DNA of 37,939 nt from Pelomyxa schiedti (Eukaryota; Protista; Evosea). A program made the position numbers and the translations under genes. The notes beneath the pieces are model-generated. The model saw nothing but the letters and a program-made list of their open reading frames with translations. It had not been told where the DNA came from and did not search any database. Positions 33,322-37,666 of the stretch are shown one piece after another. The stretch is from the NCBI GenBank assembly GCA_020536535.1, contig JAHLWZ010000960.1, forward strand, positions 1 to 37,939, in the 5' to 3' direction. Position 1 is the first letter of the stretch. The number at the start of each line of letters is the position of its first letter.

Positions 33322-35222
33322 CTAGAGGTCAGAGGGCCAGGTTGGAGGGTATAACTTTTGATTGACAACCTCTATACCCCAGTATTCTTGAAGCTCTCTA
33401 GTGGCACATCTCTGTGCGAAGGTACTAAGAGAGGCAACAACGCACCCACCTGTGATTGGTTCGTTTGGAGGTCATTTCCAAAGAATAATAAATAAAGTAA
33501 GATAGGTAACCTAGCCAAGCAGCATAAGCTCTGCTTGGATGAGCTATCACTCTGACCTAGGTAAAAACCCATTACATATGGCTTTGTTTCAGGATTGTAG
33601 ATGGCTGAACCTTGGTGCCGGGATGGCAAAGCTGGGTAATTTCTTTGGTGAGCCGATTATGGAATCCGGGAAAGAGAGAGTTTCCACCGGCAAGTACTAT
33701 TGGAGAAGGTCAAAAAGGATGAGCCGTGATATAAAGTTACAGAGACACCGGTATTTTGGAACATTAGTTTTTGGAGCTCAGTCTGGCAACTGCTTATTGC
33801 ATTATGGCACATGATTTGAATGCCTTCCTTTGGAGAAGTATAAGTTGCGTATTGGGTATCGTAATTCTTAATCAATGTTGGTGTGAACATTGGTTCCGGG
33901 ATCCTTCATTTGGGTTAACTAATTGTTAAAGCTATAGTTTGTGTAAAACTGTATCAATTCAGGGCCGAGGTCAACTGTTTCACCATCAGGAAGCGAATAA
34001 GTCCTTCGTTCTTTCACCTTCAAAAAAGAATAAAAAATATTTGCGGCAATGTGGATTGTATACCTGCACCTCAGGTAGAAAATGTTGGGCCACATAAGCC
34101 AGATTGTGCTTTATGTACTGAAGTTGTGGAACCCGCAACTCTTCTTGTAGATCTCTCAAGTGTTGAGAGATATCTCGCCCACCCAAGGCCATCTTCTTGC
34201 AACTTGATGTGAGAATTTGACCTTGTTTTAACTGTAAGAAGCTTGTGCAAAATGACACAGCACAAATACCTTCAAAAATAGGTATTGCTCTTGTGATATT
34301 TTCACCACAGTCCACGACAAGGCCAGATGTTCTTCCAGTTGAATAGAGAGCCAATAGTGCTGATGGTGCAAAGAACACAGCAGGACAGCTATCTCCTAGT
34401 ATATCATGAGCTAATTCTTGCCAGTTCCTTGATTCCATTCCAAGTGGTTCAGCAAAGACGACTGGGTGATCACTGGTTGCACCAAGGAATTTAAGACCCT
34501 GTTCAAACATCTTTTTGAACCGATTTGTTAGTTATTATTCAATTGCACCTTGAGGAAACCCTCAAACCTCCGTTGTGAGACTACGTAGCATGCAGTCTCG
34601 TCCATAAAACAAGTACTTGTTGATGCCAACGCACTTACCCCAATAAAAGGTTTGCTCCGGCAAATACCCCTGATGGTGCGGGAATGAATGAACAGACTCA
34701 ACATCAAAAGGTGGCAATTCATTGTTACTGTAGCCAACTCTGGTCCTGCCGGAACCAATGTCGGCGATAACTGCCGGTCTGAATCCACCTTTGTTCCATG
34801 ACTCTGCCCAGTTTGCAACCTCTGAAGTCGCACTCAACTCAGACAGTTGTCCACATGTTACATTCTCCTCAGTTCCGCTCACATCAATAACATTGTTCAC
34901 AATTCCCTGATCCACAGTAACGCAGGGCCTGCTATCTATTCAGGGGGAAAAACAAACAAACAAAAAAAAAAAGAAAAATGTCTCCAAATAGTTAATACTC
35001 GAACATTAAACACACACAAAATTTCAAACCGAGAAGTAGAGGAGGAGGAGAAGTTGACCAACCGTCGTGGCACCATTTGCCGTCGACCACGAACTTGTAC
35101 TGATGGCGACCCGGAGGCAAGGACACACGCAGCGACGGCGTCGGGTCACAAAACCACCGCCGGAGCATCTGTCGACGCTCCCAGTTTGTGAAGCTGCCCG
35201 CCAGCTCCACATTCATGGCCAT
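33322..35222 (-). CDS. Actin-related protein fused to an N-terminal AMPK-beta-type glycogen-binding domain (CBM48)
   Basis: CBM48: VELAGSFTNW..VSLPPGRHQYKFVVDGKWCHD|DSRPCVTVDQGIVNNVIDV. Actin fold: AVIADIGSGRTRVG, HPVVFAEP, AVFFAPSALLALYSTGRTSGLVVDCGE..IPIFEG, LGGRDIS, TYSLPDGETV, IPEPMFTP, VLAGGNSLFPG..RL.KE, AYAAWLGGCVVASLSTF. The start may lie further upstream (about 35394). Confidence 0.88.
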
Positions 35223-35987
35223 TCCCCCCTCAGCCCCGTTGGTAATCCGCTCCGGCGCTGCGAACAAAACCCGCCCGTTCCCCCTGGGTGGTGCCTGAAT
35301 TTGTTCATTGTGTTTGAAAATTAGCGGAGGATGATATTCACAGCTTGCACGAGCGAGACATTATGTAAGTAAAGTCAGTCATACTCTGTACCATGTAATT
35401 ATTCACAGGGTCTGTGTGATCCAGACGACTGTGCACATAAGGCAGCTGCCTTTCCTTGTTGAATCTGTAATATGTACAATACCCTATGTCGTTAATGCAG
35501 TACTAACTCCTCTAGGTGCTGCTGCTGAGGCAACCAAGCATTATATGTGAACCAAAGAATTATTCAACCAGAGCTACAGTCCTGTCTTATGTTGCCAGCT
35601 CTAAATACACCGAAAATTTACTCAATTCTCTCCCGCCACATAAGAACTGCACAACAGACTATGCCCCTTGCCTCCCTGCCCATGATGCCTGCATGGGACC
35701 GCAACACTGCAATAATCCCACCCTCAAATCCCACAACAACTACAACATCCACTCCAAGCCTTCTGAGCCAAATTCATTATTTCCATTCCTGAGCCTCAGT
35801 CTCAAGTACTGTTCATAAAATGCATTTTGGTCTCACACATTTTACAGAGCCACTGACGCAAATGAGCAGAACAGCATTACATTTGCCATAGCCGGGTTTC
35901 TCATGCAACCCATATTAGTTCTTACTAATCGTGGGCAGGTATGGAACTTTTTCACAGTACTTCTCCAAACTTGTTCTGAGAATATAA
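35215..35987 (+). CDS. Putative spliced orphan gene, head-to-head and overlapping with the CBM48-actin gene
   Basis: Candidate introns 35288-35324, 35365-35408 (GTAAGT..CACAG) and 35467-35515 (GTAAT..CTAAC..CTAG) keep one reading frame from ATG 35215. Further consensus introns follow near 35806-35847 and 35896-35938. No homology was recognised. Confidence 0.4.
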
Positions 35988-37666
35988 CATATTATAACCC
36001 AAGACCACACTTATCCCAGACTCCACCAAAAATCTTTACGAAAACAAGAACTTCAATAAGTTACCAAGTAAAAAAGACCTTGCCAAGGTACAGCCGAAGC
36101 ACAATTAAAGTCGATGTACATAACCATCCCCCAGGATATATGTTGCCGGCTATTTAGCACATTACGTGTTACACTATTGTATTGTGTGACGAGGAAACGA
36201 TGCCTCCGACTCAAGCGGAGTCGGAACGACATAAGAAACTGCTAGCTGAGGGTTGTAGTCACTCAAACTGTAACTACCACACAAACCACTTGCACGAGTC
36301 CCACATCAAGGGAGTGTGGAAGTTATCAAGCAGTTCTCTTCCAGTCATCTCTGTAAAGGAATAGTCTGCATTGACCTAGGTTAGGTTCTTTTTTCTTTCT
36401 GCAACGATTTTATGTCTATCTTATGTTCTCGTGGGTGAAATATAATGAAGTTCCAGTATTATTCAAAAACTTAAACAAGTATTTTAAAATACTGTCTTTT
36501 AACATGTTAGTGCTGATAATGCTGAAGAGGAGTGAGGTGCATTAAATGCCTTTCTTGGCTTTGTGGCTCCTGTCAAACTTGAGTTTGACATACATTCATC
36601 AAAGTCGGACACATCACTTTCCTGTGTTCGACTTGGTGATTTGATTTCCAACCTCCATAACTGGTGCTTGAGTGCTTTTCTGTCTGTAGAACAAAATGGG
36701 ACCCAGACACCCTGTGTGCTTCTGTGGGGATGTGTAGTTCAGTGTGTGACGAGAAAGCAGAGAACAAGAACGAGATCAAGAAAGGATTCTATTATTTGTT
36801 CTGTTTTGTTGTTTGTTTTGATTTATGAGGTTTGGGTCGTGATTCTAAGGTCGGAGTGTGTCGGGCTTATAAGGACTCGAAAACGACTTGAAATCGAGGT
36901 GAACGATCAGGTAGATTTCCGCGAACTTGATTTCCTAAGATGTCAGCTCCGAGTGCTGACTCAGCAGGTCAGTCTCAGTGTTCGTGCTCGCGCTCGCAGA
37001 GAGTTTGCTTGTGTATTCTACTGAATCACACAACCCAACCAACACAATTCCAATCAAACTTTACACAACCCATCTTTCTGGTACCAATGCACATCCCATA
37101 ATTCTGGTAGAGAAAAAAAAAGGAGGTTCTTAAGATAAAAACTGAGAAGAAAACAGGGCTTCCCCCCCCAAATAAGTTCAAATACATTGCATTGGAGTGA
37201 TGTAAGACCTCTTTTGGGTTTCTAACTAATGTCTCAATGACTTGTTACCTTATTTGGCGACATAAACCCAACAAACAACAACAGGATTTTTATTGAAATT
37301 TGTTTTTGGTACAGTTACCATACCAGGCAACTAACATGTACATGCCCATCTTCTGGCACGTCTGTGCGCTGGGCGGCATCTACCTCTGGAGACTGGTGAT
37401 GCGACACTCGGATTCGATCGATCAAACATATTCGGGAAACAAAGCCCAGGTGCCAGGGAAAAGCGCTCGTCACCTCCATTCCGCCAGAGCCCAATCCAGT
37501 GCATTGGGGAACCCGCCTCCCATGAGGGTTCTGTAGCCACCGCGGCCTTTTTTGGCTGGCACTATCACTTTGCTGACGAAAACGCCAATGAGGGTCCACA
37601 GCGCAGCCAATTGGACCCGGGGCCAGGCATCCTCTGCTGCCTTGCCCAACGCAGGGCCTCCCATGG

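Follow-up and report, generated by a model that had tools for sequence, protein, structure and literature searches.

The CBM48 carbohydrate-binding module (CBM) of the AMPK beta subunit (AMPK-beta; PF16561; structures 1Z0M/1Z0N and 2F15) docks on the N-lobe of the kinase, and the plant PTST/FLO6 family consists of non-enzymatic CBM48 scaffolds with coiled coils, which act on starch in plastids. Among actin-fold proteins, the bacterial MamK and ParM position organelles, hydrolyse ATP and polymerise, and the divergent mammalian protein ACTL7A has an N-terminal domain of its own (PF16840). Here we describe a multi-exon gene on the minus strand of contig JAHLWZ010000960.1 from the nuclear genome of the anaerobic archamoeba Pelomyxa schiedti (GenBank assembly GCA_020536535.1), whose product, hereafter CBM48-actin, joins a CBM48 domain to a divergent actin fold. 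The 37,939 nucleotides (nt) of this contig, referred to as the window, are intron-rich and eukaryotic in character around the gene. A first-pass annotation, made from the sequence alone, had proposed a spliced minus-strand gene that ends at 33324-33322 and includes an ATG at 35222, and had guessed an anaerobic amoeba as its host; all of this was borne out.

Both domains of CBM48-actin are ordinary; their combination is not. The CBM of AMPK-beta is the best sequence match of its N-terminal domain, whereas the C-terminal scaffold that binds the alpha and gamma subunits is lacking and the partner is an actin fold rather than a kinase complex. As in PTST/FLO6, a CBM48 would deliver a non-catalytic module to a storage polysaccharide, but the cargo here is an actin fold in the cytosol of an amoeba. 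ACTL7A, ACTL7B and ACTL9 are likewise divergent actin folds, about 25-30% identical to CBM48-actin and scoring about as other single-domain actins do; however, none of them has a CBM, and they are not orthologous to the Pelomyxa proteins, which form a clade of their own. The analogy with MamK and ParM lies in an actin-fold protein attached directly to an organised cargo, although there is no sequence kinship closer than the superfamily, and hydrolysis and polymerisation are doubtful in CBM48-actin.

Three loci of P. schiedti encode CBM48 fused to an actin-like domain

Taken singly, the exons of the gene identify both domains. The exon at 35267-35063 alone matched Pfam AMPK1_CBM (PF16561) at 50.7 bits (E 2e-13, profile positions 11-60 of 85; gathering cut-off 26.8 bits), and the exons at 34933-34568, 34510-34064, 33902-33750 and 33694-33611 matched Pfam Actin in collinear profile order, with profile positions 5-39 lying within the fusion exon 34935-34568. 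The intron 35062-34936 interrupts the CBM48 domain, whose final strands (GIVNNVIDV) share one open reading frame (ORF; 34562-34915) with the actin phosphate-1 loop IADIGSGRTRVGY. The two parts are joined by a conserved linker of about 35 residues (CGQL...W.E.W), with no stop or start signal between them.

CBM48-actin occurs at three loci of the genome: the window (annotated product P0001, 'actin, cytoplasmic 2 [Pelomyxa schiedti]'), L002 6001-7977 (product P0151) and L001 5811-7803 (product P0002, 'actin 2'). The CBM exon of L001 (5811-6020; AMPK1_CBM 27.7 bits) is absent from the GenBank model of P0002; it has its own ATG, precedes the annotated second exon by about 110 nt and uses the same phase-1 splice. 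Indeed, the phase-1 intron falls at the same codon in all three genes, directly after CD or HD behind the position of AMPK-beta1 W133. As whole proteins, P0001 matched AMPK1_CBM at 34.1 bits, up to residue 67 and thus within the fusion exon, and P0151 at 38.8 bits over residues 21-91; beyond AMPK1_CBM, Actin and weak actin-clan matches, Pfam gave nothing in P0001, P0151 or P0002, including no AMPK-beta C-terminal domain. The CBM exon of the window is 60% identical to residues 5-66 of P0151, with the identity reaching upstream of ATG 35222. This exon is under purifying selection, the ratio of nonsynonymous to synonymous substitution rates (dN/dS) being 0.37 between the two close paralogs and 0.25-0.29 between the window copy and the paralogs, and the synonymous divergence (dS) of 1.4-1.7 between the window copy and the paralogs indicates an old split. 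The single-exon Pfam matches, the shared exon, the two paralogous loci and the selection on the CBM exon confirm the first-pass proposal of a CBM48 and an actin fold in one spliced gene: the fusion is real and not a gene-model artefact.

Outside this genome, no other protein with CBM48 and actin was found in 1.84 billion cluster representatives, 5.8 billion clusters or the JGI metagenome contigs, and among the search matches PF16561 and PF00022 occurred together only in the three P. schiedti proteins. An exhaustive phmmer search of the 1.84 billion representatives with the largest actin exon returned P0001 and P0002 (55% identity), all other matches scoring at most 71 bits. Ten matches picked for a long N-terminal extension ahead of the actin fold, as well as the P. 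schiedti protein P0018 ('actin 4'), were free of a CBM and showed a B-box, CRAL-TRIO, Ist1-filamin or no domain. The CBM region alone, queried against 5.8 billion sequences, retrieved only itself; this blank says little, as shared words were few and the E-values are scaled to a database of that size. A metagenome scan matched 600 stretches, none of them a relative, and a scan with a family-specific pattern for GRTSGLVVDCGE gave two actin-like genes, L003 and L004, neither with CBM similarity (the N-terminus of L003 was read directly, that of L004 checked by tblastn only). Literature searches for CBM48 with an actin-related protein (Arp) and for AMPK1_CBM with actin returned nothing relevant, and the P. 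schiedti genome paper mentions actin only as a marker for the polymerase chain reaction (PMC8887013). The CBM48-actin architecture is real, specific to this lineage and so far undescribed; the earlier statement that no characterised actin or Arp is known to carry a CBM48 stands, none being described or catalogued outside the P. schiedti genome in our protein, metagenome and literature searches.

Two side observations came from these searches. L003 (JGI contig Ga0209230_10115341, 167-1373, minus strand) shares the otherwise family-specific motif STGRTSGLVVDCGE; its N-terminal extension, about 55 residues long, is charged, and the gene has no CBM. Other unusual actin fusions are present in public data, namely Ist1-filamin-actin (P0135), B-box-actin (P0052) and CRAL/TRIO-actin (P0056).

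The window copy keeps the sugar contacts of AMPK-beta

The CBM48 domain matched the CBM structures of AMPK-beta1/2 in phmmer at E 1e-8 and 38 bits, being divergent overall from AMPK-beta, and a protein-language-model search grouped the CBM exon among CBM48 clusters. In the phmmer alignment to rat AMPK-beta1 (1z0n), which is gapless over the sugar-binding strands, all four sugar contacts are kept, as had been read at first pass: W100, K126, W133 and N150 correspond to W41 (FTNW), K70 (YKF), W77 (DGKW) and N94 (IVNN) of our final 496-residue model, encoded on the minus strand at 35183-35181, 35096-35094, 35075-35073 and 34897-34895, respectively. The equivalent of L146 is replaced by Q. From the retention of the four contacts despite the divergence from AMPK-beta, we infer that the window copy may bind glucan; by these residues it is the family member that still resembles a glucan binder.

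The actin-like domain can probably hold a nucleotide but not hydrolyse it

Over the whole protein, Pfam Actin (PF00022) scored 181-190 bits across profile positions 3-397 (181 bits for P0001; 183.8 bits for P0151, residues 123-462). For most of residues 121-465, an AlphaFold model of the paralog P0151, not of the window protein, reaches a predicted local distance difference test (pLDDT) score above 90. The best 30 matches of this model among the Swiss-Prot models are all conventional actins, with a template modelling (TM) score of 0.84 normalised to the hit. Conventional actin is the top match in both the PDB and Swiss-Prot, agreeing with CBM48-actin in fold and domain order.

In the numbering of a 375-residue metagenomic actin, the window copy keeps D11, G13, S14, G15, Y143, D154, G156, K213, G301, G302 and R335, whereas K18R, Q137S, D157E, G158N, H161R, Y169Q, E214H, T303N, K336A, M355R and W356C are replaced. 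All three nucleotide loops named at first pass (DIGSG, DCGE and LAGGNS) are present, though phosphate loop 2, D-C-G-E-N, is only partly canonical, G158 being replaced. The corresponding codons on the minus strand lie at 34762-34748 (DIGSG), 34363-34361 (Q137S), 34312-34298 (DCGEN), 34291-34289 (H161R) and 33688-33683 (G301 and G302). The hydrolysis residues are replaced in the same way (Q137S and H161R) in all three paralogs, and the two other copies carry A14 and A15. With intact phosphate-1 and adenosine loops, the window copy can probably still hold a nucleotide; with Q137 and H161 replaced, hydrolysis is probably lost, which makes the 'ATPase module' of the first-pass annotation doubtful.

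The loops that make filament contacts are altered. Around residues 70-95, subdomain 2 falls about 8-17 residues short of that of actin; the DNase-binding loop (D-loop) is 3 residues shorter (as read from the actin alignment of P0151), the plug loop has an insertion of about 10 residues and the C-terminus is unlike that of actin. The shortened D-loop and subdomain 2, the enlarged plug loop and the altered barbed-end cleft make it unlikely that the protein forms canonical F-actin alone; on these features, canonical polymerisation is doubtful.

Proposed function and alternatives

We favour, with moderate confidence, the view that CBM48-actin is an adaptor whose CBM48 would bring a non-hydrolysing actin-like domain onto glycogen granules; glycogen tethering as such is plausible. 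In this scheme the CBM48 of the window copy would still bind alpha-glucan, so that the glycogen granules, abundant in this amoeba, would carry the actin-like domain on their surface. That domain would hold nucleotide without hydrolysing it and might work like an orphan Arp, as a bridge between the granules and either conventional actin filaments or partners that bind actin; such coupling would serve the clustering or positioning of granules rather than the formation of dynamic filaments. The cell biology of the host is dominated by glycogen granules. One Pelomyxa study reports numerous granules coating the cytoplasmic organelles (PMC12018496), and a Pelomyxa species description cited in PMC10579272 names an association of nucleus and glycogen in its title. 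In animals, the link between glycogen and the actin cytoskeleton is only indirect, via proteins such as glycogen synthase moving to actin structures (PMC3240831). A single protein that combined glucan binding with an actin fold would make the link between glycogen and the cytoskeleton direct and genetically simple. If glucan binding holds, CBM48-actin would offer a concrete handle on the organisation of large glycogen bodies; it would also stand as a clear example of domain fusion bringing an actin fold to a cargo other than a membrane.

Several observations weigh against the adaptor, and we take them together with the alternatives on which they bear. In the paralogs P0151 and P0002, the equivalents of K126, W133 and N150 are replaced by M, P and R, respectively, leaving W100 as the one contact kept. 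With three of the four sugar contacts lost there, glycogen binding cannot be assumed family-wide, and in most of the family the CBM48 may serve something other than glucan binding. In addition, AlphaFold gave the CBM part a pLDDT of 27-45, both in the full-length paralog and for the CBM alone with 5 alignment rows; the alignment being shallow, these models say nothing on how the domain folds. The main rival, which we judge unlikely but worth serious attention, is a CBM48 that no longer binds carbohydrate and now acts as an intramolecular or protein-protein regulatory domain, in a family unrelated to glycogen. It would explain why two of the three copies lack these contacts and yet have a CBM exon with the low dN/dS given above; the conserved linker suggests a fixed domain arrangement, and the docking of the AMPK CBM on its kinase is a precedent. 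The window copy is harder to reconcile with it, since all four contacts are kept there, including two surface tryptophans with little reason to persist unliganded.

A bolder reading than the adaptor, by analogy with MamK on magnetosomes, is a eukaryotic cargo-bound actin system, in which actin-like domains anchored on glycogen by the CBM48 would form a shell or network, by themselves or together with actin, and so build and position glycogen bodies and the glycogen coats around nuclei and organelles. We regard this storage-granule cytoskeleton as improbable.

The 5' end of the window copy is the second point of difficulty. Upstream of ATG 35222, the coding frame continues without a stop to about 35283 and is homologous there to the N-termini of the paralogs; in the first CBM48 strand, the window reads RVLFAAP where the paralogs read PVLFRAP and SVSFRAP, and phmmer extends this homology to AMPK-beta2. 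No in-frame ATG precedes the first strand in the frame 35222-35283, and the ORF that begins at ATG 35222 is without this strand, so translation from there may yield a CBM48 of doubtful folding. A single solution was found to fit. It places the ATG at 35361 and splices a GT donor at 35341 to an AG acceptor at 35284; the resulting intron is in the correct phase and, at 58 nt, within the range of the other short introns (46-61 nt). This is the only ATG whose donor and acceptor restore the frame homologous to the paralog N-termini. This inferred mini-exon would add MSRSCKL and restore the first strand. The CBM48 described as complete at first pass would therefore be complete only with the putative upstream start, and lacks its first strand when read from ATG 35222. 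An assembly frameshift that would bring ATG 35308 into frame was rejected, as contigs of three DNA runs match the window over 35264-35430.

These features would also suit a window copy that is a decaying or N-terminally truncated paralog that would have lost its original start codon, starting at 35222 or 35168 with a crippled CBM48 or making nothing useful: homology runs past the last in-frame ATG, the agreement of three DNA runs with the assembly excludes a frameshift as the cause, RNA depth is low and the GenBank model starts at an internal Met. We give decay little credence. The frame is open over ten exons with every GT-AG site intact, the dN/dS against the paralogs is that of a constrained sequence (0.25-0.29), the 3' half is correctly spliced in RNA, a phase-correct ATG mini-exon exists and the window copy has preserved its ligand residues better than the paralogs have.

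A spliced plus-strand transcript (35409-36458) is oriented head to head with the gene; its 4 or 5 GT-AG introns measure 42-48 nt, and its RNA depth is 16. No long ORF was found in its joined exons, and it could represent a non-coding RNA or else a long 5' untranslated region. With the start of this transcript at or before 35409, less than 190 base pairs are left for the promoter region, and a distant upstream exon is unlikely.

Gene model and transcription

The final model has 10 exons, the first one inferred (Table 1), and encodes 496 residues, or 469 if translation starts at ATG 35222. All nine introns are GT-AG; eight measure 46-61 nt and one 127 nt. The overall spliced gene agrees with the first-pass annotation, which had missed the 48-nt intron 34269-34222; the intron it placed at about 34950-35058 between the CBM and actin parts exists, with limits at 35062-34936.

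Table 1. Exons and selected introns of the CBM48-actin gene in the window
Feature	Position	Strand	Content and evidence
Inferred 5' mini-exon, hypothetical	35342..35361	-	ATG 35361-35359; 20 coding bases, MSRSCKL; no RNA contig
CBM48 exon, strands 1-6, includes ATG 35222	35063..35283	-	Pfam, phmmer, paralog identity, dN/dS
Phase-1 GT-AG intron within the CBM48 domain, 127 nt	34936..35062	-	Position and phase common to both paralogs
Fusion exon: final CBM48 strands, linker of ~35 residues, DIGSG, shortened subdomain 2	34568..34935	-	ORF 34562-34915, Pfam
Actin exon with Q137S, D154-C-G-E-N loop, H161R	34270..34510	-	Pfam Actin E 3e-13; residue table
GT-AG intron, 48 nt	34222..34269	-	Spliced out in P0001; removal gives gapless alignment with paralogs and actin
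Actin exon, W-loop region, Y169Q, LGGRD	34064..34221	-	Alignments
Actin exon YSLPDGETV	33950..34017	-	Two RNA-confirmed 46-nt introns on either side, 34063-34018 and 33949-33904
Actin exon, plug-loop region, insertion of ~10 residues	33749..33903	-	Pfam Actin profile 279-328; RNA contig
Actin exon, adenosine loop LAGGNS	33611..33696	-	Pfam Actin profile 331-358, E 1.6e-5
Actin exon VRVIAHPSRAYAAWLG; K336A	33511..33556	-	Alignments
Last exon ASLSTFAQRC..., W356C, stop 33324-33322	33322..33449	-	C-terminus homologous to both paralogs after splicing

The GenBank model P0001 departs from ours at three places, namely the start, the CBM48 donor and the last intron. It starts at an internal Met (35168), and its donor at 35029 adds 11-12 residues within the CBM48, which leave gaps against AMPK-beta1 and the paralogs; the donor of intron 35062-34936 gives a gapless alignment to AMPK-beta1. 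It also reads through the last intron, 33510-33450 (61 nt), into a false C-terminus, whereas splicing restores homology to both paralogs. Two further candidates were rejected: a GTAAGT donor at about 34640, for which no acceptor in the correct phase was found, and a 38-nt intron ending in TTACAG, which shifts the frame and for which the 48-nt intron is correct instead.

The gene is transcribed and its 3' half is correctly spliced. One single-cell transcriptome run (X1) contained a single 283-nt RNA contig of the gene, whose joins 34015/34062 and 33902/33949 confirm the introns on either side of the YSLPDGETV exon, and whose loose end at 33749, reading into the next exon, confirms the intron 33748-33697. 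RNA depth over the gene is 1.5-4.6. In this run no RNA covers 34206-35277, which leaves the CBM exon and the CBM/actin junction without RNA, a further point against the adaptor; the junction rests on homology and exon structure. That no RNA contig crosses the intron 35062-34936 would also fit an artefactual merger of an adjacent small CBM48 gene with an actin-like gene, which is nevertheless very improbable, as the CBM48 itself spans this intron, its final strands share an ORF with the start of the actin part, and the layout is repeated at two further loci with no stop or start signal between the parts.

A second allele was seen in the DNA run X3, with differences at 33961, 34423 and 34454, of which two are synonymous (P355 and F222) and one is W233R. 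The X3 variant at 33961 is also present in the RNA contig.

Relationship to actins, Arps and Asgard actins

All of the 60 best PDB chains are conventional actins, scoring up to 168 bits, and those with a species named are eukaryotic. No Arp occurs among these 60 chains or among the 30 best Swiss-Prot models, which argues against orthology with the structurally solved Arps. We also built a tree of 43 rows picked from the search matches, the other matches being left out and no labelled Arp1-11 references included. In this tree, the three Pelomyxa proteins form a clade with 100/100 support on a stem of 1.7 changes per site, outside the equally supported (100/100) clade of Asgard actins. Their weak sister (93/69, flagged as a long-branch join) is P0018, a divergent P. 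schiedti actin without the N-terminal domain, and this join may be due to long-branch attraction. Orthology with conventional actin is not indicated either, given the identity of 30-31% to actins and the indels in subdomain 2 and the plug loop. The long branch and the PDB and Swiss-Prot ranks argue against a classical Arp orthologue and suggest that CBM48-actin is a lineage-specific, very long-branch actin-like protein, so that of the term 'actin-related protein' used at first pass, the divergent actin fold stands, and orthology with a classical Arp is not supported.

Acquisition of the actin part from an Asgard archaeon, suggested by a word-indexed search that ranked Lokiarchaeota and Thorarchaeota actins right after the paralogs as the best named matches, was rejected as exceedingly improbable, since that ranking is due to the picking of candidates by shared words such as LPDGETV, phmmer scores insect, human and Asgard actins alike (145-160 bits), the top PDB matches are as described above, the CBM48-actins lie outside the Asgard clade and the gene has nine or ten spliceosomal introns.

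Elsewhere in the window, at 36618-37000, the genome runs show a jump in DNA word depth, from about 50 to 500-2700, together with many variant contigs, marking a high-copy repeat.

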